The notes beneath the pieces are model-generated. The model was given only the letters and a program-made list of their open reading frames with translations, was not told where the DNA came from and made no database searches. Both the position numbers and the translations under genes were made by a program. Of a stretch of 64,000 bases of DNA, positions 13,369 to 59,578 are shown one piece after another (the stretch's first letter is position 1; the number at the start of each line of letters is the position of its first letter). The stretch is from Macrostomum lignano (Eukaryota), in the NCBI GenBank assembly GCA_002269645.1, contig NIVC01002998.1:62001-126000 (forward strand), given 5' to 3'.

Positions 13369-14359
<991 letters not shown>

Positions 14360-25299: not shown

Positions 25300-25970
<671 letters not shown>

Positions 25971-36215: not shown

Positions 36216-36484
36216 CCCCTGCCACCGATTTCCAGTCACTAATCCCCCTGCCACCGATTTCCAGTCACTGATTCCCCTGCCACCGATTTCCTGTCACTAA
36301 TTCCCCTGCCACCGATTTCCTGTCACTAATTCCCCTGCCACCGATTTCCAGTCACTAATTCCCCTGCCACCGATTTCATGTCACTAATTCCCCTGCCACC
36401 GATTTCCTGTCACTAATTCCCCTGCCACCGATTTCCTGTCACTAATTCCCCTGCCACCGATTTCCTGTCACTAATTCCCCTGCT
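36216..36484. repeat. 29-bp minisatellite (CCCCTGCCACCGATTTCCTGTCACTAATT), ~9 copies
   Basis: Directly visible. Confidence 0.93.
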
Positions 36485-36525
36485 AACAATTTCACGTCAC
36501 AAATTTCATGAGCGCTTCTTGTCTG

Positions 36526-36742
36526 TGGGTGAGCGCCCCTGCCTCTGGGTGGGGGCGCCCCTGTATCTTGGTGGACGCCCATATCTCTGGGTGAGCGCCC
36601 ATATCTCTGGGTGGGCGCCCCTATCTCTGGGTGGGCGCCCCTATCTCTGAGTGGGCACCCCATTCTTTGGGTGGGCGCCCCTGTATCTTTGTGGGCGCCC
36701 CTTTCTCTTGGTGGGCGCCCCTTTCTCTTGGTGGGCGCCCGT
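36526..36742. repeat. ~20-bp GC-rich tandem repeat (GGGCGCCCCTATCTCTGGGT), ~10 copies
   Basis: Directly visible; GGCGCC core repeated. Confidence 0.9.
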
Positions 36743-37158
36743 GTCTTACAGGCCGATGGACGCTACGCTAAGAACAAACAAAAATTGAGCTCCTGTCATT
36801 TGTCCAACTTGTTGGTCTATTTTAATTTAGTATTTGGAGATGCGCAATCTTTCTGGCGGCGATTGAACAATGATTGCAATGACATTGGTTGAATTCTGCT
36901 ATGAGTGACAACATGGGTTATACATGTAACAGGCAAATCTATTCCAATTACTAATATTTTACAAGCCTGAAATACTACCTAGTAGGACAAAAGCACATCT
37001 ATTTAGAAATTAGGCCTATCTTAAACTTGGTTTGTATCGAATTATTTGTTTTAATTTTTTTATTAAAATAGACAATTTTGTTTTCTTTTTCATCAAATAA
37101 CCTATTTCTATTGGTAACTGACTGACTCCCATTATTTTCATCAAGTTAAACAACCTAA

Positions 37159-39768: not shown

Positions 39769-40272
<504 letters not shown>

Positions 40273-40361
40273 GACACTATGACAGACAGTTGACCAAAAG
40301 CTATCAGCTATCAGCTAATCGCGTCAACTCACTTCCAGAACGTCAGCCGTGTATTTTGAGC

Positions 40362-40843
40362 ATGTCGAGTTCGTGTCTTCCCGAACCACCGAGTGACTGC
40401 GATAACAACACGGGTGGCGGCGACGACTTCAATGCAGCAGCTTCGAGAGGTTCACCCGTGACAGGCCTGTCCGTGCTCAACAGTCAGGACTCAGAGATGC
40501 AGATGCAGCTTGCCAGGCTATCCCGTCTGATGGCTCCAGCCGGTGGAAGCTCCACTGCGCTGCCACTAGAGTGCGACGCTGGATTCGAGAGCTCTTCTCT
40601 CTGCGGCAATTTCAACAATGTCGACCCGGAGTCCGATGATCGACCGACAGCCAAACAGAAGCGAGTAGCTCGCGTGGTGATGGCTGTCGCCTTCATTCTG
40701 CTGTCAATGTGCTTCGTGCTGATTGTTGTCACGCTGTCAATGTCTGATCACATTGACAGAATGGGTGAGTTTCCGGGAAGTGTGTTGAAATTAAAAAAGC
40801 GCATCTTTTTCTTCTGTCTACAGCATTGGAAAACGACTGTTAG
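40362..40843 (+). CDS. Small single-pass membrane protein; exons 40362-40764, 40824-40843
   Basis: Disordered N-terminus, basic KQKR, TM VARVVMAVAFILLSMCFVLIVVTLSM, then SDHIDRM. Donor ATGG|GTGAG and pyrimidine-rich acceptor CTACAG at 40823 give ...MALENDC*. Confidence 0.6.
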
Positions 40844-40852
40844 CACACTTCT

Positions 40853-41310
40853 CTCTTTACTCACCGTACTCTACTCTCTACTCACTGTACTCTACTCTCT
40901 AATCACTGTACTCTACTCTCTAATCACTGTACTCTACTCTCTAATCACTGTACTCTACTCTCTAATCACTGTACTCTACTCTCTACTCACTGTACTCTAC
41001 TCTCTAATCACTGTACTCTACTCTCTACTCACTGTACTCTACTCTCTAATCACTGTACTCTACTCTCTAATCACTGTACTCTACTCTCTAATCACTGTAC
41101 TCTACTCTCTAATCACTGTACTCTACTCTCTAATCACTGTACTCTACTCTCTAATCACTGTACTCTACTCTCTAATCACTGTACTCTACTCTCTAATCAC
41201 TGTACTCTACTCTCTAATCACTGTACTCTACTCTCTAATCACTGTACTCTACTCTCTAATCACTGTACTCTACTCTCTACTCATTGTACTCTATTTTATA
41301 CTCACTAAAC
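40853..41310. repeat. 21-bp minisatellite (CTACTCTCTAATCACTGTACT), ~21 copies
   Basis: Directly visible; produces the false ITVLYSL tail of ORF 40290-41315. Confidence 0.96.
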
Positions 41311-41796
41311 TCTAATCTCTGCTTTCGATCCAAAGATGAGACGGGATTGAAGGGTTGAGGTCTCTCTGCCCTAGACGCTTACGGAAAGGTTATTAATAGG
41401 CTTTTAGGCCATGCATTGGTTTCCATGCCTTGTTTCTATTCTACTCGTAGAGCATTGTTATAATTGTTATAATGACCAAGGAAGAAGCATTGCCAAAGAA
41501 TGTTATTTCTTCGGTGAAAAGTACCAACTAACAGAATGCAAATCGGAATGAAGGCTAAATGCTGATTACCTTATCAACTGAAGACTTATAAACGTAGACT
41601 TCTGGAAGACTCGACACTGAAGCTTAGGAATATTGGCTATAATGCTTTTAAAATCTTGAAAAAAATACTCTGGTATATTTAGCTTCTCAATCTTCTTACT
41701 AAGAAGTAGCAAGAAAAGAATATAGTTTTTCTCCTTTAGTTTCCTCAAGAAACTATTCAATCTGCATTTTATCTCTTTACTATAATTAGAGATAAA

Positions 41797-42054
41797 TTAC
41801 AAGCATTGATTGTTCATTTCAGTTCGAAAAGCTCTAATGCACAGTCTGAGCAAGGCCAGGTCGCAGTCAAGCTCTAAGTTGTCATCGGAGTTTCGACAGA
41901 CTTGGAATTTGGCTACCACTGCAGCATCAGCAACCGATAACTGATTGATGCAATGCAGATTCGTTTTAGTATATTTAAGAATACCGAAACCAAAAAACGC
42001 TGTGGGCTGCAAATGACAACATTGCTTGTTTATTTGTATCTGTGTAACGTACAT
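41797..42054 (-). CDS. Fragment of an unknown ORF downstream of PCIF1-like copy 1
   Basis: Shares VAK..VCRNS.DN.E.DCDLALL...IRA.RTEM..QC with 48400-48837; stops early here. Confidence 0.4.
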   Translation of the reverse strand: MYVTQIQINKQCCHLQPTAFFGFGILKYTKTNLHCINQLSVADAAVVAKFQVCRNSDDNLELDCDLALLRLCIRAFRTEMNNQCL

Positions 42055-42480
42055 GTACTGCTCGATTTAAACTAAATTAAGTGATTCCTGTTTTGCGGTT
42101 CATGGCTTAAAAATCATTATGAAGGTAAATAAAAAAGCTAAAGGTAATATTACTCGTAGATCGCGGCTCATTTCCCACGGTGAACTAGTAAAAGTAGGTT
42201 AAGTGTAGGCAGAAGTGTAGCTTCTGGTGTCAAGTGGTTAAAATGAATAAAAAGGTTTCTTGAGAGGCGTCTGAAGAGTCTAAGTGCCACGCATTAAAGG
42301 AAAAGTAAAACTCAATTAAACGGATACTATACTCGTATGGAATCAGCTTTGAATTTTGTTAACAAACGTAATTATTGGTTAGAGGTTACGTTTATAATTA
42401 TAGAAAACGCCTGCTAGAAAAAGAACACAGCAAATTCTATAGAGTCTTGTAAGAAAGTAAACTCTGCAAAACCACAGGAG

Positions 42481-43554
42481 CTACTGACGCTGCACCATGC
42501 ACGCCTCCAGCCAGTCGTCGCGCACCCTCGCTTCGTTCACTTGGCTAATACCATTGCGCAACTCGATAAGATCTACGTCATCCGGCAGTTGGCCAAGTAT
42601 GAAGATGCAAATTCGAGCAAGAGGCCGGTAGATAATTCCATAGTTGTCCTGCTGAAGGAATTCTTGCTGATTAAAGTCGATCCTGGCCACCTTTTGGGGA
42701 GATTCGTCCAGCCGCTGCCAGCCCGGGTTGTCATCCCAGTGCGGGAAGGTGACAAAAAACCAAAACTTGCCTGGCTCCGCATCGTCCAGAGTTTCTAAGA
42801 CTCTCTCGGCAGTGGCGTTCAGCACAGGCTCCACAAAGGGCGGGCCGAGACTCCAGCCGCCCGGATATCCGGACAGGTCGAGGCGGAAGAAGTTTCCCAG
42901 ACTGCCAAACGCGGCGTCAGTGTCATTGAACAGGCTGCAGAACTTGACGCCATCTCGTCCCAGAAGGCGGCAGTTCAGAGGCGACGAGAAGCCCTCATAG
43001 GTGACGTGGCCAACGTCGTACAGAGCGTCGAGTCCCGACACGCACATGCCAGACTCACCGCCGTAGAACTTGCACAGATGAGCGTAGCGAAGGCACATCA
43101 GCGCAGTCGCGTCAGTGCCGTATGTTTGCGCCAGGTAGCGAATTCGAAGACAATTCCGGGTTTGGAAATCACCCACGAGTATATTTCCACTGGTTCCGCT
43201 CTCGGTGTATCGAACAGCAACATCAGGCAGTGGTTCATCCTCGAGATCAGTGCCCAGAAATTCTTCGATACTGTCGAACACCTGGTTGGATATTCTCTTT
43301 GCCGTATCTTCATTCGCGCGTAAATTCTGTTGCAGCATCCTCTCCAGTTCCGTCCTGAGGTTTTCATTAAACGGTTGCTGTGGCAACAACGGATAGGCAG
43401 CTTCTTGATCCGCTGTGTTGAAGAGTTGCACGATTTGCAGAAACCTACCAAACACGTTTAATGCGGCATTCTTGTGCTTATTCTCGGGACCCCATTTAGG
43501 AAGGGCTGTTCGAAAGTCTTGAAAAAGCCTTTCGATAAAATTGTATTGTCGCAT
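42481..43554 (-). CDS. PCIF1/CAPAM-like methyltransferase-domain protein, copy 1 (intronless, no WW domain, 357 aa from the internal Met)
   Basis: LRY...EGFSSPLN...FCSLF.DTD..FGSLGNFF...GGWSLGPPFVE...F..TFPHW matches the PCIF1 catalytic pattern (ECFASPLN...YCSAF.DTD..FGS.G...ANPPF...P.W). The original ATG at 43600 is out of frame. Confidence 0.85.
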   Translation of the reverse strand: MRQYNFIERLFQDFRTALPKWGPENKHKNAALNVFGRFLQIVQLFNTADQEAAYPLLPQQPFNENLRTELERMLQQNLRANEDTAKRISNQVFDSIEEFLGTDLEDEPLPDVAVRYTESGTSGNILVGDFQTRNCLRIRYLAQTYGTDATALMCLRYAHLCKFYGGESGMCVSGLDALYDVGHVTYEGFSSPLNCRLLGRDGVKFCSLFNDTDAAFGSLGNFFRLDLSGYPGGWSLGPPFVEPVLNATAERVLETLDDAEPGKFWFFVTFPHWDDNPGWQRLDESPQKVARIDFNQQEFLQQDNYGIIYRPLARICIFILGQLPDDVDLIELRNGISQVNEARVRDDWLEACMVQRQ

Positions 43555-45505
43555 CTCTTTGGCGATTTTTTTCCGGTTCTATTCCAGCGAATTCGGCCAT
43601 TATTTTCACACGGCTTGATTGTCTCAGTAATCGTTAGGGTAGTTTAGAGTGCAGATATTTGCAGCTCGGTGTTTTTTCAATGGCCTGTATTTATGTCGTT
43701 GCTCTCCAGCCGGTAGAGATTTTCATCGTTTATATTTCCAAGAAATGAAACAAAATCTACGACAATAAAAATTCTCGCTGACGCGAGCGAGGGCAGGGAA
43801 ATGTACAGTTTTGCAACTGAGGCAAAATTCCAGGAAATGGCTACTGTACATAACTCAGATCCAAATAACTGGATGTATAGTCTCTTCGGCCCTGAAAATT
43901 GTTTTTTTTAACTAGAAACAATAGCCCAAGTGGCGCGCGCCGCCACTCGCTCATTGTAGGCAGCGCTAGAGCAGCTTATGTCCAGACAAAAAGTGCGCAC
44001 AGTTATGTTCTTACCCCAAAAAGTCTGACCCCCGGCCTCAGTTCGTCTTTATGCAAAAGAGAGAGGCATACGAAGCTGCCGTGAAATGCGCAAGTACCTG
44101 CCGCAAAGTTTTGCTAGATTAATTTTCAAAATATATGATGAGACCATCTTCAATTCGAGCACAAGAACGATGACTTAACTGGACAAGCTTTTTATCTTCG
44201 AGTACTATTAGTAGCATTTAAAGCTCGACGCTTCGAATGATGGCAACCAAAAACTTGATCAAAGTGATATTTTCTAGAATTTTGCAACAAAAAGTAACTG
44301 GTCATTTTGAACATTGATTTTAAACTAGGATGACTGTAGGAAATTATTTTGAAGACAATTTCACTTCTAGGATTATAAACTCAAAGCTGAAGTTTCTAAT
44401 CGGTGTCATATCTTAACTGCAACAGGTACGAACAAGATTAATAATTAGATTTGCAGGAGGGTTGTGGGCACCCTTGCGTAGCATCTTCCCTGACATAGCT
44501 CTACAAACAGCACTGAGACAATTCTGCCTCAGTCTTTTTGTCCTTTTGTTTTCAGTCTTTTCTGCCTCACTCCGGAGCACATTAGCACGCTTCAAACATT
44601 AGCACATTAGCACGCTTCCTGACTTTCAAATCGTCAGGAATGTAACACTATGTGCCTTGTAGGTTGGCATACATGGGTGTAAATCGCATCGGCTAATTTT
44701 CGGGAACAAGCCCTAGATGAATCAAACCAGAGGTACGCTCGTAGTGGTGCGAGAGTCAAATTAGTTTACTACTGGCTTACCATCTGGAGACAATGGCGCA
44801 ACATTTGTGAGTGCGACTCTATGACTTGCTGTAGGTTTTTGTTTTTTGTCGTAGTCCAGATTTCAGGGTGACAGATCAGGACGTGCTCAACTTAATTCAA
44901 TCAAAATCAATTGATGAAATCTATGGCATCGTCTTCGCCCTCCCAGTATGATCAGCAGCATCTCGAACGGAGATAGATTAGAGACTAAGACGCTGAAAAG
45001 ATGCAACAGATTACCATGTCTCTTTCTACTTTAAAAAAGGTCTTTACGCTCAAACCAAGCCACTGGTAACTTTTGAGCATTCTACTTTTGCCAAACAACT
45101 TTCCAAACATGATATTTAATAGCAATTAGTAGCAAAACGTCCAAAAGCACAGTTCTAGACTTTTTATGCGTAAAATAGTTGCTGAGGATCTATCGAAATA
45201 TAGAGGGTATTCAGAGAAATTCAGTACATCAGAGAAATTGTCCTTGGGTATCTGGTGCCACATGTTGAAGGCCAAGACACTCTGCTTGGGCCACGACACT
45301 CTGCTTGGGCCAAGACACTCTGCTTGCTCCCGATGAGGCATCTGCGGTGTCAGCATGGGAAGCGCAATCTGCTAATTTCAACATTTCTACGGTGCTAAAA
45401 ACACCAACTCCAAGACTTAAAAAAAAAGTCCAAGCAGACTTTTCGACGAACATATCGGAAGCAGCACCGACGCCCACAGAGCCGACTCCTCCGGTGCTCC
45501 CTTCA

Positions 45506-46829
45506 ATGAGGCTTGGGCCTGGCTACATCCACAATATGCAGCAGCAGATCCAAGGCCTTGTTGATTTTCCGTTGGAGAGCCCACATGGTCTTCTTTATGT
45601 GCAGCTGAGCATTCACCGAGAGTTTGCGATGAGAAGCAGCGCACTTGAGGCCAAAGTCGATGCGCTAACGAGTGAGATAACCGGATATCGCTCGGAGATC
45701 AAGCGGCTGTCATCTATTATTGATCCTAATAGTGAATCTGTCCAGGTGACAACTTTCGAAGCGATAGACTCGTGGGAAGACTATATCCGCTTCATTGAAA
45801 ACCCCGAGGTTTTGCACGAGAATTCGGTGAGTGTATAATACGCTTTTTGTAAAAAGTGTTTGTTTTGTAAAAATATGTAAAAAGATTTACATCTTTTGAG
45901 ATTGAGGCTGAGCAAATTGATGCATTAACTACTGTGTATATATACATAAAATACAAAAACTGAAGTAAAGTTTAAATATCCCAGCTAATTAAAAATCGCT
46001 TTGAACTCTTTCCTTTGACAGAGAAATCATTTGCGACTCTTCGCGCGTGCCAAGTGGGAAGATTCGGTACGCGACATGCTCGACTCCGCCCCAAGGCTGA
46101 AGATGCAGGCCGTGGTCAACTACAAGGGAGTCGACATACAGCAGCGAGCCACACAGGCTGGTGTACCTACCCATTTAAGTGACGATGATCTTGGACTTAA
46201 AAAAGTATTTTTGCCATTTGTTCAAGGTTAGTGCTATTTTTCACTATAACATTTATGAGCAGATCTTTAGCTCCTATGATTCAATACAAGTTAGACCGCA
46301 TGCACTGCTTAAAAAGACTTCAAGAATAAGCCAAATTATATCTCCAATCTACTACTACCCGACCATGAGTAGCAATGCAAAAATGTTTTTTCCAAGAAAT
46401 TTTAATTAAGATCTAATTGTTGCTGTTCATTTATCTTTAACAGAAGCGGTCACGAAGATCTTCGGCAAAATCGGAGATGACAAAAGGCCTCCGATCGGAG
46501 CGGTCGCAAACGCTTGCCGCGATCACCTCAAGCGCGGCGGCGATCGTTTCACACAGCGAATTCATCGCAAGGCCAGTGAAAAACCTCGGTCTACTAATAA
46601 ACCTCAGCGGCTGGTTTGCAAGTATCGACCTCAGCAACCCCAGGAGCTTTCAAAGACTGCAGCCGCTTCTGGAGCAGCTTGTGCCGTGCAGCAAAGACAG
46701 ACCCAGAAGAAAGCTGCCGCCTCTTCAAAGGCGGCTTCACGCAAGCGCCGAAGATCTAGCGACTCTGATTCCTCTGATGCTAGTTCTATCGTGGACGTGT
46801 ACTCGAATTCTAGCGATTTTGAAATCTAG
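45506..46829 (+). CDS. DUF4806/BEN-like domain protein; exons <=45506-45826, 46022-46226, 46444-46829
   Basis: GT-AG introns (phase 0, phase 1) join a coiled coil to DSVRDML...VVNYKG...LGLKK.F..FVQEAV.....I..V...LKRGGDR, the DUF4806-type pattern, followed by a basic/Ser-rich tail. The 5' end is uncertain. Confidence 0.6.
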
Positions 46830-47708
46830 TAAAGTATGAACACTTGACGTCATCTCATTGTAGTTAACAATTATTTTTGTGTAATTTTATCGAGTTAAAT
46901 TAGCTAAACAGTGAGTTTAATGTATGATTATGAGTGCATGCAAATTTGAAGGATCTCGTAAACCAGTGCTAACGGATACGATTATCAATAGTCGCTGAAC
47001 TCAGAATTGTCTATTCAGCTTGAGTGCTCACATTATGTATTTTCTATTTTGTTTAAACTTCCTTAGTTACTGGTAGTTAGAAACAAAATTATTTTGTTTA
47101 ATTTCTTGCTAATGCAAATTTTCCTTACGCTTATGTTAGTTTTTTTCAGAAATTCAATGATTAATTACTAGCATATTTTAAACATAAAGTTTTTTATAAA
47201 TATTAATAAACCTTTCGTACTCTGAAAAGTATTTGTTTGCTCATGTACTCGCTCATGGGCTAAGCTCATGTACTCGTAGTTACTAAAGAAGTCAGCTGAT
47301 GCAGACACATGTCGTCGACGTGCTGATGGCTTGGCAAGGCGCATAGAGGCTTATTAAATATTCTAGCGCTCATGAAAAAAATCCGACCTTCTGGCAGAAT
47401 CGTTCAATATATCGACGGTCCTGAGGGCTGCTGACTTGATTCTGCGTTGCTCCAGTAACGACGCAGCGAAAACGCGTTCACATAAAAACATTTAATTTTT
47501 AGCTCAACTCGAGATCATAGCACTATTTCAGCTTTCAGCATCTTTCTCTTTGCTTTTATTTGATAATCGAGCCAACCGGTGCTGGAAAATTAAATCAGTT
47601 TGAGGAGGACGAGAGGTGAGCGGGTGGGGTTGCGCTGAGCTTGCACAGCAAAATGCCTACTGAGCACTAGAGCTTAACCCAGCCCAAATGAACAAGCTCT
47701 AGGCCAGT

Positions 47709-47990
47709 GTGGTTGACACTCGAACAACCCCGGAATCTGGAGTGAGCTTCCACAGCCAGCCTCTCCAAGACGCTGCTCTTGAGAAATGGAAGCGAGAAAA
47801 CCCGAGAAGACAGTTTAAACGGGCGAAGTTCTCCAAGATTTGCTCTCGCGATTTTTATTTCCCCATGACTTTATTAAAGCATCAGCGGATACCAACGTCA
47901 CACGCAAAGAGAAGCGAGTCGCTATCAAGGAGGTGTCTGAAGCTTGAAGCGGTTCCATTCATTTTCCCAAATGCTCCCATCTACTTATGA
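47709..47990 (+). pseudogene. Degenerate THAP zinc-finger domain (P-element-type transposase N-terminus remnant)
   Basis: GVSFH..P....LEKW......F...K.SKICS.DF.....LKLEAVP.IFPN.P.YL follows THAP spacing. The N-terminal CxxxxC is lost and the ligand His is replaced by Asp. Confidence 0.7.
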
Positions 47991-48399
47991 TCTCACAAGA
48001 AGGCACAGCGAGCAACCTCAGTGACCTCAGGAGAAAGAGCTGGAATTGGAGTCTTTCTGGAAGCCGACTTCAATGCTGAGACGAACCTTCAGGAGATTTA
48101 GCTGCAAGCTGGAGCAGGAAGCAGCCAAGCCAGCTGGATTCCAGACGGCTATCCAAGGCAAGCTCTGCATCTATATGCTACAGACAGCTTCTGAATTCGT
48201 GACCTTGTTTTTTCTTGGGCTTAATTCGTTACAGAGGCATGGCCATAGAATGCTATTTTCGGGTGAAAAGTGCCAATGAACAGGAGGAAAACCGACATTC
48301 ATACGAGCGTATTGGCTGAAGGCTGATTCTCTTATCAACTGGACTTATAAACGGAGGGCTTCTGGAAGACGTGACATTGAAGCTTAAGAATGTTGACTT

Positions 48400-48837
48400 T
48401 CATACTTTGAAAATCTTGAAAAAAAACTCTATCTGAGCGTGTGAATCAGTAAAAAATGACACTTGTATGGGGAATTGTCGTGCGGAATTGTCTACTAAGA
48501 AGTAGCAAGAACAGAATATAAACTTCTTTTTCTGTATATTTTTCAATAAAATTTGAAGTCTGCATTCTTCAAACGTATGCAAGAACTCAGAAATCGATGC
48601 TGGGATTTCTTGGTCTTGAATCTCTTTACTTGAATTGAAAATAAATCGCCAACACTGACCGGTCATTTCAGTTCGACAAGCTCTTATGCGCATCATGAGC
48701 AAGGCAAGGTCGCAGTCAAACTCGAAGTTGTCGTTGGAGTTTCGGCAGACTTTTAATTTTGCTACCTCAACAATTCGGCAACTGATAACTGATTGATGCA
48801 ATGCAGATTGGCTTAATATATCTATATTTAAAAACAC
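48400..48837 (-). CDS. Unknown ORF downstream of PCIF1-like copy 2
   Basis: 145-codon frame; conserved at protein level with 41797-42054, including synonymous changes. Confidence 0.45.
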   Translation of the reverse strand: MFLNIDILSQSALHQSVISCRIVEVAKLKVCRNSNDNFEFDCDLALLMMRIRACRTEMTGQCWRFIFNSSKEIQDQEIPASISEFLHTFEECRLQILLKNIQKKKFIFCSCYFLVDNSARQFPIQVSFFTDSHAQIEFFFKIFKV

Positions 48838-49283
48838 CGAGTAACCCTTTGGGCTTTAAATGAAAATATTTTTTGTTAATTTGCACTTGTGTAACATACT
48901 GCTCGATTTAAACTGAACTGAGTGAAAAAATTACTATGAAAGTAAATAAACAAAGCTTATTACGTAATATAGATCGCGCCTCATTACATACGGTAAACTA
49001 GAAAGTGTAAGCTAAAGTGAACGCATGCCTGACTTTTAAAGAAAAAGTTGTTTTATTCAACAGGTTTTTAAGCTACGCTCATAGCTTCCGGTATTACATG
49101 TGAGAGGTTAAACTGAATAAAAAATTATTTCTGTGGTGTCTGAAGATTTTTCAAATGGCTGCTGTTAGCTAGTTGTCAGAGGTTTTTAACTATAGGAAAC
49201 TCCTGGTAGAAATATATTATATAACACAGAAAATTATATAGAGTAGAGTCTTTTAAGAAGTTAACTCTGCCAAACCACAGGAA

Positions 49284-50357
49284 CTACTGAGGCTGCACCC
49301 TGCACGCCTCCAGCCAGTCGTCGTGCACCTTCGCTTCGTCCAATTGGCTAATACGATTGCGCAACTCGATTAAATCTACGTCGTCAGGCAGTTGGCCGAG
49401 TATGAAGATGCAAATTCGAGCAAGAGGCCGGTAGATAATTCCATAGTTGTCCTGCTGAAGGAATTCTTGCTGATCAAAGTCGATCCTGGCCACCTTTTGG
49501 GTAGATTCATCCAGCCTCTGCCAGCCGGTGTTGTCATCCCAGTGCGGGAAGGTGACAAAAAACCAAAACTTGCCCGGCTCCGCATCGTCCAGAGTTTCTA
49601 AGACTCTCTCGGCAGTGGCGTTTAGAACGGGCTCCACAAAGGGCGGGCCGAGACTCCAGCCACCCGGATATCCAGACAGGTCGAGGCGGAAGAAGTTTCC
49701 CAGACTGCCAAACGCGGCGTCAGTGTCCTTGAACAGGCTGCAGAACTTGACGCCATCTCGTCCCAGAAGGCGGCAGTTCAGAGGCGACGAGAAGCCCTCA
49801 TAGGTGACGTGGCCAACGTCGTACAGAGCGTCGAGTCCCGACACGCACATGCCAGACTCACCGCCGTAGAACTTGCACAGATGAGCGTAGCGGAGGCACA
49901 TCAGCGCAGTCGCGTCAGTTCCGTATGTTTGCGCCAGGTAGCGAATTCGAATACAGTTCCGGGTTTGGAAATCACCCACGAGTATATTTCCACTGGTTCC
50001 GCTCTCGGTGTATCGAACAGCAACATCAGGCAGCGGTTCACCCTCGAGATCAATGCCTAGAAATTCTTCGATACTGTCGAACACCTGGTTGGATATTCTC
50101 TTTGCCGTATCTTCATTCGCGCGTAAATTCTGTTGCAGCATCCTCTCCAGTTCCGTCCTGAGGTTTTCATTAAACGGTTGCTGTGGCAACAACGGATAGG
50201 CAGCTTCTTGATCCGCTGTGTTGAAGAGTTGCACGATTTGCAGAAACCTACCAAACACGTTTAATGCGGCATTCTTGTGCTTATTCTCGGGACCCCATTT
50301 AGGAAGGGCTGTTCGAAAGTCTTGAAAAAGCCTTTCGATAAAATTGTATTGTCGCAT
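49284..50357 (-). CDS. PCIF1/CAPAM-like methyltransferase-domain protein, copy 2 (chimera of copies 1 and 3)
   Basis: Same motifs. The N-terminal part equals copy 1 and the remainder equals copy 3. Confidence 0.85.
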   Translation of the reverse strand: MRQYNFIERLFQDFRTALPKWGPENKHKNAALNVFGRFLQIVQLFNTADQEAAYPLLPQQPFNENLRTELERMLQQNLRANEDTAKRISNQVFDSIEEFLGIDLEGEPLPDVAVRYTESGTSGNILVGDFQTRNCIRIRYLAQTYGTDATALMCLRYAHLCKFYGGESGMCVSGLDALYDVGHVTYEGFSSPLNCRLLGRDGVKFCSLFKDTDAAFGSLGNFFRLDLSGYPGGWSLGPPFVEPVLNATAERVLETLDDAEPGKFWFFVTFPHWDDNTGWQRLDESTQKVARIDFDQQEFLQQDNYGIIYRPLARICIFILGQLPDDVDLIELRNRISQLDEAKVHDDWLEACRVQPQ

Positions 50358-52308
50358 CTCTTTGGCGATTTTTTTCCGGTTCTATTCCAGCGAATTCGGC
50401 CATTATTTTCACACGGCTTGATTGTCTCAGTAATCGTTAGGGTAGTTTAGAGTGCAGATATTTGCAGCTCGGTGTTTTTTCAATGGCCTGTATTTATGTC
50501 GTTGCTCTCCAGCCGGTAGAGATTTTCATCGTTTATATTTCCAAGAAATGAAACAAAATCTACGACAATAAAAATTCTCGCTGACGCGAGCGAGGGCAGG
50601 GAAATGTACAGTTTTGCAACTGAGGCAAAATTCCAGGAAATGGCTACTGTACATAACTCAGATCCAAATAACTGGATGTATAGTCTCTTCGGCCCTGAAA
50701 ATTGTTTTTTTTAACTAGAAACAATAGCCCAAGTGGCGCGCGCCGCCACTCGCTCATTGTAGGCAGCGCTAGAGCAGCTTATGTCCAGACAAAAAGTGCG
50801 CACAGTTATGTTCTTACCCCAAAAAGTCTGACCCCCGGCCTCAGTTCGTCTTTATGCAAAAGAGAGAGGCATACGAAGCTGCCGTGAAATGCGCAAGTAC
50901 CTGCCGCAAAGTTTTGCTAGATTAATTTTCAAAATATATGATGAGACCATCTTCAATTCGAGCACAAGAACGATGACTTAACTGGACAAGCTTTTTATCT
51001 TCGAGTACTATTAGTAGCATTTAAAGCTCGACGCTTCGAATGATGGCAACCAAAAACTTGATCAAAGTGATATTTTCTAGAATTTTGCAACAAAAAGTAA
51101 CTGGTCATTTTGAACATTGATTTTAAACTAGGATGACTGTAGGAAATTATTTTGAAGACAATTTCACTTCTAGGATTATAAACTCAAAGCTGAAGTTTCT
51201 AATCGGTGTCATATCTTAACTGCAACAGGTACGAACAAGATTAATAATTAGATTTGCAGGAGGGTTGTGGGCACCCTTGCGTAGCATCTTCCCTGACATA
51301 GCTCTACAAACAGCACTGAGACAATTCTGCCTCAGTCTTTTTGTCCTTTTGTTTTCAGTCTTTTCTGCCTCACTCCGGAGCACATTAGCACGCTTCAAAC
51401 ATTAGCACATTAGCACGCTTCCTGACTTTCAAATCGTCAGGAATGTAACACTATGTGCCTTGTAGGTTGGCATACATGGGTGTAAATCGCATCGGCTAAT
51501 TTTCGGGAACAAGCCCTAGATGAATCAAACCAGAGGTACGCTCGTAGTGGTGCGAGAGTCAAATTAGTTTACTACTGGCTTACCATCTGGAGACAATGGC
51601 GCAACATTTGTGAGTGCGACTCTATGACTTGCTGTAGGTTTTTGTTTTTTGTCGTAGTCCAGATTTCAGGGTGACAGATCAGGACGTGCTCAACTTAATT
51701 CAATCAAAATCAATTGATGAAATCTATGGCATCGTCTTCGCCCTCCCAGTATGATCAGCAGCATCTCGAACGGAGATAGATTAGAGACTAAGACGCTGAA
51801 AAGATGCAACAGATTACCATGTCTCTTTCTACTTTAAAAAAGGTCTTTACGCTCAAACCAAGCCACTGGTAACTTTTGAGCATTCTACTTTTGCCAAACA
51901 ACTTTCCAAACATGATATTTAATAGCAATTAGTAGCAAAACGTCCAAAAGCACAGTTCTAGACTTTTTATGCGTAAAATAGTTGCTGAGGATCTATCGAA
52001 ATATAGAGGGTATTCAGAGAAATTCAGTACATCAGAGAAATTGTCCTTGGGTATCTGGTGCCACATGTTGAAGGCCAAGACACTCTGCTTGGGCCACGAC
52101 ACTCTGCTTGGGCCAAGACACTCTGCTTGCTCCCGATGAGGCATCTGCGGTGTCAGCATGGGAAGCGCAATCTGCTAATTTCAACATTTCTACGGTGCTA
52201 AAAACACCAACTCCAAGACTTAAAAAAAAAGTCCAAGCAGACTTTTCGACGAACATATCGGAAGCAGCACCGACGCCCACAGAGCCGACTCCTCCGGTGC
52301 TCCCTTCA

Positions 52309-53632
52309 ATGAGGCTTGGGCCTGGCTACATCCACAATATGCAGCAGCAGATCCAAGGCCTTGTTGATTTTCCGTTGGAGAGCCCACATGGTCTTCTTTA
52401 TGTGCAGCTGAGCATTCACCGAGAGTTTGCGATGAGAAGCAGCGCACTTGAGGCCAAAGTCGATGCGCTAACGAGTGAGATAACCGGATATCGCTCGGAG
52501 ATCAAGCGGCTGTCATCTATTATTGATCCTAATAGTGAATCTGTCCAGGTGACAACTTTCGAAGCGATAGACTCGTGGGAAGACTATATCCGCTTCATTG
52601 AAAACCCCGAGGTTTTGCACGAGAATTCGGTGAGTGTATAATACGCTTTTTGTAAAAAGTGTTTGTTTTGTAAAAATATGTAAAAAGATTTACATCTTTT
52701 GAGATTGAGGCTGAGCAAATTGATGCATTAACTACTGTGTATATATACATAAAATACAAAAACTGAAGTAAAGTTTAAATATCCCAGCTAATTAAAAATC
52801 GCTTTGAACTCTTTCCTTTGACAGAGAAATCATTTGCGACTCTTCGCGCGTGCCAAGTGGGAAGATTCGGTACGCGACATGCTCGACTCCGCCCCAAGGC
52901 TGAAGATGCAGGCCGTGGTCAACTACAAGGGAGTCGACATACAGCAGCGAGCCACACAGGCTGGTGTACCTACCCATTTAAGTGACGATGATCTTGGACT
53001 TAAAAAAGTATTTTTGCCATTTGTTCAAGGTTAGTGCTATTTTTCACTATAACATTTATGAGCAGATCTTTAGCTCCTATGATTCAATACAAGTTAGACC
53101 GCATGCACTGCTTAAAAAGACTTCAAGAATAAGCCAAATTATATCTCCAATCTACTACTACCCGACCATGAGTAGCAATGCAAAAATGTTTTTTCCAAGA
53201 AATTTTAATTAAGATCTAATTGTTGCTGTTCATTTATCTTTAACAGAAGCGGTCACGAAGATCTTCGGCAAAATCGGAGATGACAAAAGGCCTCCGATCG
53301 GAGCGGTCGCAAACGCTTGCCGCGATCACCTCAAGCGCGGCGGCGATCGTTTCACACAGCGAATTCATCGCAAGGCCAGTGAAAAACCTCGGTCTACTAA
53401 TAAACCTCAGCGGCTGGTTTGCAAGTATCGACCTCAGCAACCCCAGGAGCTTTCAAAGACTGCAGCCGCTTCTGGAGCAGCTTGTGCCGTGCAGCAAAGA
53501 CAGACCCAGAAGAAAGCTGCCGCCTCTTCAAAGGCGGCTTCACGCAAGCGCCGAAGATCTAGCGACTCTGATTCCTCTGATGCTAGTTCTATCGTGGACG
53601 TGTACTCGAATTCTAGCGATTTTGAAATCTAG
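52309..53632 (+). CDS. DUF4806/BEN-like domain protein, duplicate copy
   Basis: Same exons as 45506-46829 at +6803. Confidence 0.6.
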
Positions 53633-54511
53633 TAAAGTATGAACACTTGACGTCATCTCATTGTAGTTAACAATTATTTTTGTGTAATTTTATCGAGTTA
53701 AATTAGCTAAACAGTGAGTTTAATGTATGATTATGAGTGCATGCAAATTTGAAGGATCTCGTAAACCAGTGCTAACGGATACGATTATCAATAGTCGCTG
53801 AACTCAGAATTGTCTATTCAGCTTGAGTGCTCACATTATGTATTTTCTATTTTGTTTAAACTTCCTTAGTTACTGGTAGTTAGAAACAAAATTATTTTGT
53901 TTAATTTCTTGCTAATGCAAATTTTCCTTACGCTTATGTTAGTTTTTTTCAGAAATTCAATGATTAATTACTAGCATATTTTAAACATAAAGTTTTTTAT
54001 AAATATTAATAAACCTTTCGTACTCTGAAAAGTATTTGTTTGCTCATGTACTCGCTCATGGGCTAAGCTCATGTACTCGTAGTTACTAAAGAAGTCAGCT
54101 GATGCAGACACATGTCGTCGACGTGCTGATGGCTTGGCAAGGCGCATAGAGGCTTATTAAATATTCTAGCGCTCATGAAAAAAATCCGACCTTCTGGCAG
54201 AATCGTTCAATATATCGACGGTCCTGAGGGCTGCTGACTTGATTCTGCGTTGCTCCAGTAACGACGCAGCGAAAACGCGTTCACATAAAAACATTTAATT
54301 TTTAGCTCAACTCGAGATCATAGCACTATTTCAGCTTTCAGCATCTTTCTCTTTGCTTTTATTTGATAATCGAGCCAACCGGTGCTGGAAAATTAAATCA
54401 GTTTGAGGAGGACGAGAGGTGAGCGGGTGGGGTTGCGCTGAGCTTGCACAGCAAAATGCCTACTGAGCACTAGAGCTTAACCCAGCCCAAATGAACAAGC
54501 TCTAGGCCAGT

Positions 54512-54793
54512 GTGGTTGACACTCGAACAACCCCGGAATCTGGAGTGAGCTTCCACAGCCAGCCTCTCCAAGACGCTGCTCTTGAGAAATGGAAGCGAGA
54601 AAACCCGAGAAGACAGTTTAAACGGGCGAAGTTCTCCAAGATTTGCTCTCGCGATTTTTATTTCCCCATGACTTTATTAAAGCATCAGCGGATACCAACG
54701 TCACACGCAAAGAGAAGCGAGTCGCTATCAAGGAGGTGTCTGAAGCTTGAAGCGGTTCCATTCATTTTCCCAAATGCTCCCATCTACTTATGA
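54512..54793 (+). pseudogene. Degenerate THAP domain, duplicate copy
   Basis: Identical translation to 47709-47990. Confidence 0.7.
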
Positions 54794-55202
54794 TCTCACA
54801 AGAAGGCACAGCGAGCAACCTCAGTGACCTCAGGAGAAAGAGCTGGAATTGGAGTCTTTCTGGAAGCCGACTTCAATGCTGAGACGAACCTTCAGGAGAT
54901 TTAGCTGCAAGCTGGAGCAGGAAGCAGCCAAGCCAGCTGGATTCCAGACGGCTATCCAAGGCAAGCTCTGCATCTATATGCTACAGACAGCTTCTGAATT
55001 CGTGACCTTGTTTTTTCTTGGGCTTAATTCGTTACAGAGGCATGGCCATAGAATGCTATTTTCGGGTGAAAAGTGCCAATGAACAGGAGGAAAACCGACA
55101 TTCATACGAGCGTATTGGCTGAAGGCTGATTCTCTTATCAACTGGACTTATAAACGGAGGGCTTCTGGAAGACGTGACATTGAAGCTTAAGAATGTTGAC
55201 TT

Positions 55203-55640
55203 TCATACTTTGAAAATCTTGAAAAAAAACTCTATCTGAGCGTGTGAATCAGTAAAAAATGACACTTGTATGGGGAATTGTCGTGCGGAATTGTCTACTA
55301 AGAAGTAGCAAGAACAGAATATAAACTTCTTTTTCTGTATATTTTTCAATAAAATTTGAAGTCTGCATTCTTCAAACGTATGCAAGAACTCAGAAATCGA
55401 TGCTGGGATTTCTTGGTCTTGAATCTCTTTACTTGAATTGAAAATAAATCGCCAACACTGACCGGTCATTTCAGTTCGACAAGCTCTTATGCGCATCATG
55501 AGCAAGGCAAGGTCGCAGTCAAACTCGAAGTTGTCGTTGGAGTTTCGGCAGACTTTTAATTTTGCTACCTCAACAATTCGGCAACTGATAACTGATTGAT
55601 GCAATGCAGATTGGCTTAATATATCTATATTTAAAAACAC
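55203..55640 (-). CDS. Unknown ORF downstream of PCIF1-like copy 3
   Basis: Identical translation to 48400-48837. Confidence 0.45.
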   Translation of the reverse strand: MFLNIDILSQSALHQSVISCRIVEVAKLKVCRNSNDNFEFDCDLALLMMRIRACRTEMTGQCWRFIFNSSKEIQDQEIPASISEFLHTFEECRLQILLKNIQKKKFIFCSCYFLVDNSARQFPIQVSFFTDSHAQIEFFFKIFKV

Positions 55641-56086
55641 CGAGTAACCCTTTGGGCTTTAAATGAAAATATTTTTTGTTAATTTGCACTTGTGTAACAT
55701 ACTGCTCGATTTAAACTGAACTGAGTGAAAAAATTACTATGAAAGTAAATAAACAAAGCTTATTACGTAATATAGATCGCGCCTCATTACATACGGTAAA
55801 CTAGAAAGTGTAAGCTAAAGTGAACGCATGCCTGACTTTTAAAGAAAAAGTTGTTTTATTCAACAGGTTTTTAAGCTACGCTCATAGCTTCCGGTATTAC
55901 ATGTGAGAGGTTAAACTGAATAAAAAATTATTTCTGTGGTGTCTGAAGATTTTTCAAATGGCTGCTGTTAGCTAGTTGTCAGAGGTTTTTAACTATAGGA
56001 AACTCCTGGTAGAAATATATTATATAACACAGAAAATTATATAGAGTAGAGTCTTTTAAGAAGTTAACTCTGCCAAACCACAGGAA

Positions 56087-57205
56087 CTACTGAGGCTGCA
56101 CCCTGCACGCCTCCAGCCAGTCGTCGTGCACCTTCGCTTCGTCCAATTGGCTAATACGATTGCGCAACTCGATTAAATCTACGTCGTCAGGCAGTTGGCC
56201 GAGTATGAAGATGCAAATTCGAGCAAGAGGCCGGTAGATAATTCCATAGTTGTCCTGCTGAAGGAATTCTTGCTGATCAAAGTCGATCCTGGCCACCTTT
56301 TGGGTAGATTCATCCAGCCTCTGCCAGCCGGTGTTGTCATCCCAGTGCGGGAAGGTGACAAAAAACCAAAACTTGCCCGGCTCCGCATCGTCCAGAGTTT
56401 CTAAGACTCTCTCGGCAGTGGCGTTTAGAACGGGCTCCACAAAGGGCGGGCCGAGACTCCAGCCACCCGGATATCCAGACAGGTCGAGGCGGAAGAAGTT
56501 TCCCAGACTGCCAAACGCGGCGTCAGTGTCCTTGAACAGGCTGCAGAACTTGACGCCATCTCGTCCCAGAAGGCGGCAGTTCAGAGGCGACGAGAAGCCC
56601 TCATAGGTGACGTGGCCAACGTCGTACAGAGCGTCGAGTCCCGACACGCACATGCCAGACTCACCGCCGTAGAACTTGCACAGATGAGCGTAGCGGAGGC
56701 ACATCAGCGCAGTCGCGTCAGTTCCGTATGTTTGCGCCAGGTAGCGAATTCGAATACAGTTCCGGGTTTGGAAATCACCCACGAGTATATTTCCACTGGT
56801 TCCGCTCTCGGTGTATCGAACAGCAACATCAGGCAGCGGTTCACCCTCGAGATCAATGCCTAGAAATTCTTCGATACTGTCGAACACCTGGTTGGATATT
56901 CTCTTTGCCGTATCTTCATTCGCGCGTAAATTCTGTTGAAGCATCCTCTCCAGTTCCGTCCTGACGTTTTCATCCAATGGTTGCTGTGGCAACAACTGAT
57001 AGGCAGCTTCTTGATCCGCTGTGTTGAAGAATTGCACGATTTGCAGAAACCTGCCAAACACAGCAAAAGTCGCATCCCTGTGCCTTTCCTCGGGACCCCA
57101 TTGAGGAAGAGCGGTTCGATAGTCTTGAAAAAGCCTTTCGATAAAATTGTATTGTCGCATCTCCCTGGTGAGTTGGTCCGGTTCTATTCCAGCGAATTCG
57201 GCCAT
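56087..57205 (-). CDS. PCIF1/CAPAM-like methyltransferase-domain protein, copy 3 (full frame, 372 aa)
   Basis: Intact from MAEFAGIEP; motifs EGFSSPLN, FCSLFKDTDAAFGSLGNFF, WSLGPPF. Confidence 0.87.
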   Translation of the reverse strand: MAEFAGIEPDQLTREMRQYNFIERLFQDYRTALPQWGPEERHRDATFAVFGRFLQIVQFFNTADQEAAYQLLPQQPLDENVRTELERMLQQNLRANEDTAKRISNQVFDSIEEFLGIDLEGEPLPDVAVRYTESGTSGNILVGDFQTRNCIRIRYLAQTYGTDATALMCLRYAHLCKFYGGESGMCVSGLDALYDVGHVTYEGFSSPLNCRLLGRDGVKFCSLFKDTDAAFGSLGNFFRLDLSGYPGGWSLGPPFVEPVLNATAERVLETLDDAEPGKFWFFVTFPHWDDNTGWQRLDESTQKVARIDFDQQEFLQQDNYGIIYRPLARICIFILGQLPDDVDLIELRNRISQLDEAKVHDDWLEACRVQPQ

Positions 57206-59578
57206 TACTAACAGAAGGCTTGATTATCTTAGTAATTGTGAGAATAGATGTTGAATGTTGAGGTTTTCAGCCCAGGATTTTTTCATAACCTGCATTTATA
57301 TCGTTGCTTCCCAGCCCATAGAGATGTCATTGTTTAAACTTCCAAGAAATAAAAAAATCCACGAAGTACGAGGGCAGGGAACTGTACGGTTTTACAGATA
57401 GAGCGAAGGTCTCCAGGAAATGTCTACCGTACATAACTCAGGTTCAGGAGCGTAGAGTAGGGTTGGAGCGCCTGGGGGAGCTCAGTGCTGCGTTTGTTTC
57501 CTGTCCTCCTGTGCGGGCCGGCCCACGCATCCACCCCTCCGTTGCCATGTCAGGTCGGGGTTGGGCGTCGGTCCCGGGCCTGCCCGCGGCTCCTCCCCAG
57601 AAGTGGCCTCCGCGCCGGGCTCATTTAGAGTTCTCCGGCCGGCCGTCCCGGCCTGTCAACCGTCCAGGTCAAACTGCTGTCTCGCCTTTGATGTCTGCCT
57701 GAAATCGATGGAAGCTGCTGTAGCTTTGCTATGCGCTGCATGTACTATTTGAAGGCTGAGCCTATTTGCCCATTTCTATTATTCTAGCTTGTTTTCTAAG
57801 GCATATTTACATTTTAACCGCAGCAAAGTTCTGACCACCAACTATTTATAAGCAAAAGAGAGAGGCCTACGGAGCTGTCGTGAAATGCATAAGCACTTGC
57901 TGCAAAGTTTTCCTCGACTACTTTTTAAAAGATGAGACCAACTTCAATTCCAGTATCAGATTTCTATTTTCTGCATCTATGTTCTGCAGTCTACTTTTAG
58001 TAGCATCGACACTTAAAGTGATAACCACAAACATCTTGATCGAAGTCGTATTTTAGGCAAAAAGTATCGGTTTTTTATTGGCAATTAATCTTTCCAAAAC
58101 ATTAATTTTAAACTAAGAGAAAATAAAAAGCTAAGAATCAACATTTAGTTAATTAGTATTTTAATTACGACGCGTTTCGCACTTTGAGAGGTGCATATTC
58201 AGGTTTTTTGGTAGCGAACGAAACGAACGAGGTAAAAAATAATACAATGAGGGTATGAAAATCAATAGCATTTGTTAAGATGGCCAGGTTTAGGCGGGTT
58301 AAGACGGTTCTTGAATTAATTCAAACAAAACTAATAAAATCTATGGCATCATCATCGCCATCCCAGCATGATCAGTATCGTCTTGAACAGAGATAGATTA
58401 GAGACAAAGACGATGAGAAGATGGAACAGATGACCAGCCTCTTCCTACGTCCGAAAAAAGACCTTGCGCTCAAACCAAGCCACTGACAATTTTTTGCAGC
58501 GCCGGATAGAGCAACGCAGACACAAGAAGTTCAAGAACGCGAGCTAACTTTTTGTTGTTGCACTCCTTCTCAAACAAGAATCAAGTTGCCAGCTCTCCGG
58601 ACCGTCGAGATATTCAACAATTCTGCCATTTTCCATAAGCGCCAGTCAGGGCCATAACTGCCCCTCAGTGCCGTCTTACCAAGCTAACAAAGTTCATCAG
58701 CACTTCGATGACATGTGTCTGCATCAGCTCTGACTCTGTTGGTCACTACATGGGCTGAACCCAGACCGAGTTTCTGGGCTTTCTAGGAAACTATTTCAAA
58801 TTTCCCTGATGTCGCTGACCAAGATTCAATAATGGACAAAGTTAAACTGCTGGACATCCTCAGCTATATATAGCCTTTCAAGCATTCTATCATCACCCCG
58901 AGACCGTCGCCAACTTCAGCGTCCCCCGAACGTGATTTTTCATCACAACCTTTACATTTCTTAAGGTCTTAAAAAACTCTTTTACTCATAAAGAAGGCTA
59001 CAAGTATGCTTTTAAAGGTAATTGCTACCTATTTCTATTAATAAAATTAGTGGAAAGTTGTTTTCTTAAGGAGAATCTTCAAATCAAAACGCGTTCACTT
59101 ACAAACATTTAATTTTTAGCTCAACACAAGCTCATAGCACTTTTTCGGCTTTCAGCATCTTTCCCTTTGTTTTACTTTGATAATTGAGCCAGCCGGCGCT
59201 GGACAAACAAAACAGTTTGAGAAGGACGATCGAGAGAGGTGAGCGAGTTGGGGTGAAGCGTTTTAAATGAGCCGACTGACTCAGCATGCACAGCAAAATG
59301 CCTAGTGAGCACTAGAGCTCGACCCAGTCCGACCGAGCTATCCATAGGCCAGTGGGGTTGACCTGTCCAGCATCACGTGCTGTGTGGATATACACTGGCC
59401 ACTCTTGAGCTCTGACCGAGCTGCTTAGCCAGTGCATTTCTATTACTCTTCGTTGTCGCTATATTAGCTCTGAGCAATTTTACAATGCTTCACCTCTCTG
59501 AGCACAAAGGCTAGTGGTCAATTGCTTCAAAACTTGCTTGTGTGCTACAACGCAGCAAGGTGCAGAAGCGGCTTCATC

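Follow-up and report, generated by a model that had tools for sequence, protein, structure and literature searches.

What are three compact relatives of the mRNA cap methyltransferase PCIF1/CAPAM doing side by side in the genome of a flatworm? We analyzed a 64,000-nucleotide stretch of DNA from Macrostomum lignano (contig NIVC01002998.1, positions 62,001 to 126,000 of the forward strand; hereafter the window, numbered from its own first letter), in which an earlier note, made from the letters alone, had pointed to a tandemly amplified cassette of stand-alone PCIF1/CAPAM-like genes that might have been horizontally acquired or carried by a transposon. PCIF1/CAPAM is usually taken to be a single-copy, WW-tethered animal enzyme, and we asked how these genes relate to it, what their proteins might do and how the array arose. 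On balance, we favor the interpretation that the window holds a resident locus of a short form of the family PF12237, which has recently undergone a crossover, which is likely to encode a non-catalytic derivative, and which probably descends from an ancient viral or protist acquisition in which no transposon was involved. Two points are of most interest, and we regard both as leads: an animal gene family has its affinity with viral types, and one of its conserved sub-lineages no longer has the catalytic Asn.

The three genes are uninterrupted open reading frames (ORFs) on the minus strand with a period of exactly 6803 bp:

42481-43554, minus strand: PCIF1-like copy 1, the A-type paralog, 357 amino acids (aa); PF12237 with E-value (E) 4.3e-25; allelic to BOX15_Mlig015920g3
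49284-50357, minus strand: PCIF1-like copy 2, a recombinant of 357 aa, recognized from differences binned along the gene and from a run of exact identity
56087-57205, minus strand: PCIF1-like copy 3, the B-type paralog, an intact ORF of 372 aa; PF12237 with E 1.3e-25

Thus, the three intronless ORFs of 357-372 aa, their 6803-bp spacing and their PCIF1 motif order (EGFSSPLN, FCSLF, GNFF), as described in the earlier note, were all confirmed, as was its assignment of the ORFs to the PCIF1 family by a hidden Markov model search. The matches to PF12237, which is named PCIF1_WW yet models the catalytic region, had scores of 90.5 and 88.8 bits (E ~1e-25), compared to a curated gathering cut-off of 31.1. 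The genes had also been called WW-less, intronless and half-length, and this description held. A Pfam scan found no WW domain in the ORFs themselves, nor in the three minus-strand frames of the upstream sequence, which was scanned over 3 kb for copy 3 and over 4.8 kb of the spacer for copies 1 and 2. An in-frame stop lies just 5' of the first ATG, and in the public annotation the A-type gene has one exon only. Copies 1 and 2 carry the same single frameshift relative to the 372-aa form of the public allele, a one-base difference in the length of a homopolymer that leaves a 357-aa ORF beginning at an internal Met; this frameshift may be an assembly error. Copy 3 is 99.5% identical to an unannotated ORF on a public M. 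lignano contig (L001 3280-4398), and its closest protein is BOX15_Mlig015920g3 of the same species (90% identity).

The A-type gene is annotated in the Mlig_3_7 gene set, which was built from RNA-seq-guided transcript assemblies and whose gene names mirror transcript clusters (PMC5730564); its presence there points indirectly to transcription. Public databases already list the proteins, as uncharacterized PF12237 entries. Our literature search found no paper mentioning the identifiers of these genes, and nothing relevant on PCIF1 together with Macrostomum, flatworms or giant viruses.

We modeled copy 3 (372 aa) with AlphaFold2 from an alignment of 97 sequences and obtained a predicted local distance difference test (pLDDT) score of 91.7 and a predicted template-modeling score (pTM) of 0.91, compared to a pLDDT of 36 in a single-sequence prediction. 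In the model, the N-terminal part is helical, and an alpha/beta (Rossmann) methyltransferase domain comes after it. In a Foldseek search of PDB, the six best matches were all CAPAM/PCIF1 (E 6e-14 to 4e-11, over ~400 columns), and after these came only generic methyltransferases with E of 0.02 or worse. Similarly, the family profile matched CAPAM chains only among PDB sequences (6irx, E 1e-44; 6irv, E 2e-41). Thus, structure prediction, a check that had been proposed with the original claim, yielded a confident model with CAPAM as its top PDB matches, and we conclude that the window proteins have a compact, single-exon CAPAM/PCIF1 catalytic-core fold (helical plus Rossmann) with no WW domain. 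They share with vertebrate CAPAM/PCIF1 (PDB 6IRV-6IS0) the PF12237 domain, the two-domain core fold and the motifs around the cofactor pocket. In contrast to CAPAM/PCIF1, the window proteins are about half as long, have neither WW domain nor linker, are encoded by a single exon in multiple copies, have ~5 extra residues between the SPLN and FCS motifs, read GPPF instead of NPPF at motif IV, and fall outside the canonical clade.

The placement of the window proteins within the family was examined with an exhaustive search of representative proteins, which returned 1643 relatives at E <=0.001 and was more informative than a word-indexed profile search, in which most matches were of the canonical type and close paralogs were missed. 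The nearest relatives are three other M. lignano proteins (Mlig030305, Mlig000263 and A0A1I8HAP9), which matched with 32-44% identity; next are three proteins on eukaryote-like contigs (P0025, P0027 and P0028), and then comes a large set of metagenomic proteins of 300-400 aa. Contigs with a readable context (e.g., L002 and L032) are giant-virus-like, with dense short genes and with Rpb5, RNase III and a family-8 glycosyltransferase (GT8). A scan of IMG/VR found relatives encoded on 29 giant-virus contigs, with the match at locus L003 spanning residues 9-355, and a scan of metagenomes found 154 relatives, none above ~42% identity over the core. Viral structure matches in BFVD were to proteins of Bodo saltans virus, Pithovirus LCPAC, Cafeteria roenbergensis virus (CroV), Hokovirus, Tetraselmis virus 1 and Salmon gill poxvirus.

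Four kinds of evidence separate these short forms from the canonical enzyme. First, whole-protein template-modeling (TM) scores were higher for a 362-aa CroV protein (0.68/0.69) and for the Hokovirus protein (0.61/0.59) than for human CAPAM (0.52/0.40). Second, the best bit scores of copy 3 fell from 200 with P0025 to ~100 with proteins of giant-virus contigs, 72 with canonical protist/fungal PCIF1, and 44 and 39 with human and zebrafish PCIF1, both of which were fragments. Third, all of the short forms, including those of the flatworm, have the ~5 extra residues between the SPLN and FCS motifs, while human, zebrafish, chytrid, diatom and dinoflagellate PCIF1 have no such insertion (spacing of 4-5 residues). 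Fourth, in a neighbor-joining tree of 200 core columns with 200 bootstraps, in which human and zebrafish were represented by fragments, a canonical clade (human, zebrafish, fungal, diatom and dinoflagellate PCIF1) was recovered in 187 of 200 replicates with the Macrostomum clade outside it; a Macrostomum-type clade of 14 sequences was recovered in 182 of 200. The tree, the insertion, the bit scores and the whole-protein TM scores thus support the suggestion that the window proteins are more like compact protist/giant-virus homologs than like animal PCIF1, and the phylogeny, which had also been proposed as a check, did not nest them within animal PCIF1. We conclude that the window proteins belong to a Macrostomum-specific expansion of a short-form branch of PF12237, apart from WW-containing PCIF1, and that outside M. 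lignano this branch is met chiefly on contigs of giant viruses (Nucleocytoviricota) and in samples of uncultured aquatic organisms.

The compact giant-virus proteins (CroV E3T4I2, 362 aa; Hokovirus; and others) resemble those of the window in that they are stand-alone proteins of 300-400 aa with the insertion signature, and they gave both the best whole-protein superposition that we found (TM 0.59-0.69) and sequence scores above those of canonical PCIF1. They differ in that the window genes sit in an animal genome among host genes, in that identity between the two groups is 14-27% (up to ~42% over the best core segment), and in that most viral and metagenomic members retain the Asn at motif IV. 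We also observed that, on giant-virus-like metagenomic contigs, a family-8 glycosyltransferase often immediately precedes the PCIF1-like domain or forms a fusion with it (P0035, P0040, P0041 and P0048; L002 8892-10999).

Within M. lignano, the paralogs are only 30-40% identical to one another and to the window proteins, and they occupy different loci beside host genes. Mlig030305, Mlig000263 and A0A1I8HAP9 share with the window proteins the compact domain and the clade recovered in 182 of 200 replicates, and Mlig030305 (361 aa, NPPF) is likewise intronless; they differ in keeping NPPF and in lying at other loci, and Mlig000263 differs further in having introns and three domains. Mlig000263 (L035 8519-15017), which adjoins a ferrochelatase gene, is annotated as a protein of 1283 aa with three PCIF1-like domains, all with NPPF, and with introns that include some within the domain; it may really have three domains, or the annotation may have fused three tandem genes into one model.

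As to its origin, the family probably entered an ancestor of the macrostomids long ago, from either a giant virus or a protist; we regard such an origin as plausible. Among matches whose source is named, the short form occurs in no animal other than M. lignano, and its named carriers are giant viruses. Its absence from other named animals leans toward transfer, with the reservation that most of the matches are metagenomic. Since the paralogs are deeply diverged, one of them has introns and their composition is host-like, any transfer must have been ancient. These same features (30-40% identity among the paralogs, spliceosomal introns in one and a host-like composition) are also what one would expect if no horizontal transfer had occurred, such that the short form is an ancient eukaryotic paralog of PCIF1 which was inherited vertically in Macrostomum and lost elsewhere, and which viruses took from a host. 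Two other observations fit vertical descent, namely that the closest relatives outside Macrostomum (P0025, P0027 and P0028) are on eukaryote-like contigs and that the flatworm clade is not nested within a viral clade in the neighbor-joining tree. However, vertical descent would require many independent losses across Metazoa, and it has to accommodate the finding that the named carriers of the short form are giant viruses with no other animal among them. We consider it possible, if rather doubtful, and retain ancient acquisition as the explanation that we prefer.

The second question is whether the window proteins are enzymes. The NPPF motif of CAPAM aligns to GPPF in the window proteins, and the Gly is encoded by GGC in all five gene copies (three in the window and two public, from two assemblies); the corresponding codon of Mlig030305 is AAT (Asn). 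Since the sister paralogs keep Asn, the Gly represents a derived change peculiar to this gene. Among 213 family domains, 195 begin motif IV with Asn; GPPF is found only in this gene group, and a small protist group has GPPY. Of 32 columns conserved at >=85% in the 94 other members, 27 are kept in the window proteins, among them the motifs that surround the cofactor pocket, and the change of Asn to Gly is the only departure at a 97%-conserved column that is unique to them. The NPPF loop is catalytic and mutation of its residues inactivates CAPAM; mutation of the motif Asn inactivates METTL16, and METTL5 is likewise inactivated by mutation of its NPPF motif (PMC8287941). With the catalytic Asn replaced by Gly in every copy, we predict that the window proteins are most likely non-catalytic or much weakened. 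At the same time, a dN/dS ratio (nonsynonymous to synonymous substitution rates) of 0.33 between paralogs A and B (dN 0.038, dS 0.117) suggests that the genes are under moderate purifying selection.

If catalysis has indeed been lost, the protein would be expected, by analogy with CAPAM, still to fold and to bind S-adenosylmethionine (SAM) and the capped 5' end of RNA. Lacking a WW domain, it would have no tether to the carboxy-terminal domain (CTD) of RNA polymerase II (Pol II). It is predicted to act as a cap-proximal RNA binder, a SAM binder or both, or alternatively to work with, or compete against, those Macrostomum paralogs that bear NPPF. There is a precedent in insects, in which the catalytic motif of Pcif1 is mutated; the fly protein is inactive in vitro, yet biologically functional (PMC10158991). 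Like the window proteins, Drosophila Pcif1 is a member of PF12237 that has a mutated catalytic motif and has been retained, and for the fly protein function has been shown (PMC10158991). In contrast, fly Pcif1 is a canonical ortholog of 920 aa which keeps its WW domain and is thought to work by binding the Pol II CTD. Thus, that mechanism is not open to the WW-less window proteins.

We considered that the window proteins might instead be active stand-alone N6-methyltransferases of the cap-adjacent adenosine, which tolerate GPPF and supply N6,2'-O-dimethyladenosine (m6Am) without tethering to the Pol II CTD. The fold and the other conserved motifs are intact, purifying selection is detectable, a small protist group has GPPY at the same place, and CAPAM catalysis does not need the WW domain (PMC8287941), all of which are compatible with activity. 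On the other hand, 195 of 213 domains have Asn where these have Gly, mutations in the NPPF motif inactivate CAPAM, METTL16 and METTL5, and Gly has no side chain with which to contact the N6 of adenine. We therefore view activity as unlikely, although deserving of attention, and favor a non-catalytic or much weakened protein.

The third question concerns the array itself. In a self-alignment, 42440-50565 repeats at 49244-57364 with 98.6% identity, and at an offset of 6803 there is an unbroken run of 6880 bp of exact identity (43256-50135 = 50059-56938), beyond which the copies differ. Copy 2 is a chimera with one switch: its 5' quarter (~200 nucleotides, nt) is identical to copy 1 and its 3' three quarters are identical to copy 3. 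Because the identical run equals the period plus 77 bp, an unequal crossover must fall inside a tract shared by all three genes:

50059-50135 (also 43256-43332 and 56862-56938), no strand: 77-bp tract, identical in all three genes, given by an exact run of 6880 bp with a period of 6803

An older event is recorded around the genes. Nucleotide identity is 92% between paralogs A (copy 1) and B (copy 3), and their flanks have kept an identity of 77-88%. The sequence upstream of copy 3 retains similarity to the spacer in the following region:

57206-59362, no strand: upstream flank of copy 3, with four collinear blocks 81-88% identical to the spacer and no WW-coding sequence

We interpret these blocks as the trace of an older tandem duplication. 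Thus, the exact duplication and the chimeric middle gene mean that the locus consists of two old paralogs and one very recent recombinant, and we conclude that its history had two steps: an old tandem duplication, which gave rise to A and B, and then a single very recent unequal homologous crossover. That crossover would have duplicated one 6803-bp unit and generated a chimeric third gene, yielding the order A, spacer, B/A chimera, spacer, B, while the public Mlig_3_7 allele stayed at two genes. Indeed, the signature of unequal crossover is present, with head-to-tail units, a chimeric junction gene, a junction in a shared tract and an allele with two copies. Thus, there is a tandem array at 6803 bp, as the earlier note had said, but its phrase "tandemly amplified" overstates a change from two copies to three by one crossover. 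Likewise, the neighboring elements that it had seen in two units are both present, but they are one segment duplicated exactly, as part of the 6880-bp run. We also note that the dS of 0.117 within the A and B genes is below the divergence of their flanks (77-88% identity), which hints at gene conversion.

The two-gene allele comes from a public 96-kb M. lignano contig (L001, GCA_002269645.1), which is collinear with and ~98% identical to the window over 32.4-60.5 kb, including the neighboring ankyrin/TRP-like gene, and which has, between the same flanks, only a B-type gene (L001 3280-4398) and an A-type gene (L001 10001-11119). The middle copy could thus be a false tandem duplication made in assembly, with the true locus having two genes as in that contig. 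Not one base differs over the duplicated 6880 bp, the only independent assembly has two copies, the same region contains a homopolymer length difference typical of long-read error, and the M. lignano genome is highly redundant and repeat-rich, which makes it hard to assemble (PMC5730564). However, the junction is exactly as predicted for homologous unequal crossover, with a clean chimera that switches once in the 77-bp tract. Furthermore, since the window differs from the public contig by ~2% throughout, it is a separate haplotype or homeolog, and the two may truly differ in copy number. This assignment fits the redundancy of the Mlig_3_7 assembly, in which 180 Mb of non-repetitive blocks are >=95% identical to each other (PMC5730564). 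We think an artefact unlikely, although it deserves to be taken seriously, and infer that the crossover is biological.

The spacers between the genes bear on the suggestion that a transposon carried them. They contain the following:

43555-49283, no strand: spacer between copies 1 and 2, without a supported gene; holds an orphan 177-aa ORF, a THAP remnant and a conserved downstream block
50358-56086, no strand: second spacer, base-for-base the same as 43555-49283; holds the second THAP remnant and the ORFs 52108-52641 and 55203-55640
45305-45838, plus strand, with an identical copy at 52108-52641: orphan ORF of 177 aa, with a sub-threshold bZIP match only (E 0.037)
47709-47990, plus strand, with a copy at 54512-54793: THAP-domain remnant, a stop-bounded fragment matching PF05485 (E 1.5e-7) over profile positions 13-87 of 87
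41553-42084, no strand: conserved block 3' of copy 1, homologous to 48314-48925 and 55117-55728 with 77-83% identity and indels

The THAP remnant that had been noticed in two units was verified by its PF05485 match. The fragment is truncated and on the strand opposite to the PCIF1-like genes, and its two copies are a single sequence that was recently duplicated. By contrast with this, two other genes proposed for the cassette did not stand. The supposed DUF4806/BEN-like gene is the 177-aa ORF, for which we rejected that identity: it has no Pfam match in the spacer frames scanned other than the sub-threshold bZIP hit, and a word-indexed search of 5.8 billion proteins found no homolog of it. The "conserved unknown ORF" said to follow each gene is instead a conserved nucleotide block of ~310 nt with ~80% identity, and we rejected a protein-coding reading of it as well, since its indels are not multiples of three and break the frame and the overlying ORFs differ (85 aa compared to 145 aa, with 38 codons in common). 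This block appears to be non-coding and is perhaps a 3' untranslated region. A 2.4-kb segment of the spacer (~45066-47470), which holds the 177-aa ORF, has no counterpart in the older unit that lies upstream of copy 3.

We found little sign that the PCIF1-like gene traveled as cargo of a DNA transposon (THAP/P-element-like or other) and was multiplied by transposition. A THAP-domain fragment does lie in the spacer, and of the two old units only one has the 2.4-kb segment. But the THAP piece is truncated and on the opposite strand, and a Pfam scan of the spacer (the plus-strand frames of ~44.9-48.4 kb and all three minus-strand frames) matched only THAP and no transposase domain. No inverted repeats of >=100 nt bracket the PCIF1-like genes, and the best short pair, of 35 nt, is part of a small inverted block, such that there are no credible terminal inverted repeats. 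Moreover, the copies are head-to-tail with a homologous-recombination junction. The flanks, which the earlier note had proposed comparing among copies, are not shared: the two paralog loci compared (L035 and L036) have only the coding core in common with the window, and no further copy of the spacer was found in the other M. lignano sequence compared. Thus, in the absence of terminal repeats, of a transposase and of shared flanks, transposon carriage is unsupported; we consider it very improbable, and infer that these genes were not carried in this way.

On both sides of the array lie genes of animal type, which include a 1313-aa ankyrin/transient receptor potential (TRP)-like ORF, an exon of dynein LC8, a second TRP-like ORF and an ORF with a WSC domain:

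31216-35157, plus strand: ankyrin-repeat and TRP-like channel ORF, intronless, 1313 aa
60707-60913, plus strand: exon for the C-terminal part of an LC8-type dynein light chain (PF01221, E 1.3e-11)
63182-63916, minus strand: second TRP-like ORF, with C-terminal channel motifs as in the 31216-35157 ORF

The PCIF1-like array is thus placed between two TRP-like paralogs. The GC content at third codon positions is 0.60 in the PCIF1-like genes and 0.50-0.74 in neighboring ORFs, no Rfam family or tRNA was found in the window, and the frames of the window that were scanned contained no virus-type gene besides the PCIF1-like genes. The ~98% match to the public M. lignano contig, together with the animal genes on both sides, means that the window is not contamination, which the earlier note had named as a finding that would count against it. 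Although the closest named relatives outside Macrostomum are viral, the idea that contamination or an endogenous giant-virus island, rather than ordinary host DNA, accounts for the region has next to no probability and is excluded for practical purposes, since the window is collinear with the 96-kb public contig, both sides bear animal-type genes and host microsatellites, the composition of the PCIF1-like genes is host-like, no further virus-type gene was found in the window, and other paralogs adjoin host genes such as that for ferrochelatase.

Several repeats elsewhere in the window were observed in passing. Very long tetranucleotide microsatellites (GACA/GTCT type) at 13300-14650, 25200-26000 and 39650-40280 yield long pseudo-ORFs in several frames, reading "CLSV..." or "RQTD...". 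A minisatellite of 29 bp spans ~0.5 kb in the window (36211-36744) and ~2 kb in the public contig (L001 15214-17289), such that its copy number differs between the two haplotypes or assemblies; another array, with a 28-bp period and copies ~90% alike, occupies ~1.8 kb at 15229-17041. An ORF of 341 aa (40290-41315) enters a 21-bp tandem repeat (40748-41419) with in-frame "SLITVLY" heptads, and this ORF is also on the public contig, with fewer 21-bp repeats. Finally, a pair of 245-bp inverted repeats (27852-28096 and 28442-28685), 96% alike and ~350 bp apart, may be a foldback element or resemble a miniature inverted-repeat transposable element.

A number of points weigh against the interpretation that we favor for the locus as a whole. 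The loss of activity is predicted from one residue. The dN/dS of 0.33 is only moderate, and it rises to 0.4-0.6 in the most recent comparisons, which involve very few substitutions; moreover, a frameshift is present near the start of copies 1 and 2, so that some copies may be decaying. The tree is a neighbor-joining tree of ~200 columns in which the place of the Macrostomum clade among the short forms has support of <=32/200, and in such a tree fast-evolving paralogs can be drawn off from their true relatives. Most of the short-form sequences are metagenomic, without taxonomy. Lastly, exact identity over 6.9 kb could also arise from an assembly error.

With these points weighed, the locus describes an animal genome with a diversified family of the compact form that is otherwise on giant-virus contigs, in which one sub-lineage has lost the catalytic Asn and is still conserved. 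It also offers a clean, datable case, in a neopolyploid genome, of a chimeric gene made by unequal crossover. Should the GPPF proteins be non-catalytic, nature would have supplied a second "dead PCIF1", and a WW-less one, which would help to separate the cap- and SAM-binding roles of the protein from its role in Pol II tethering. If the viral or protist origin is true, an RNA-cap-modifying module entered an animal and diversified there. A bolder and rather improbable proposal is that the flatworm domesticated a cap-adenosine methyltransferase of giant-virus type and expanded it into a Pol II-independent system of NPPF writers and GPPF pseudo-writers or decoys acting on mRNA 5' ends; if that were so, M. 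lignano would have an animal cap-modification pathway of viral origin, whose copy number is still changing today.

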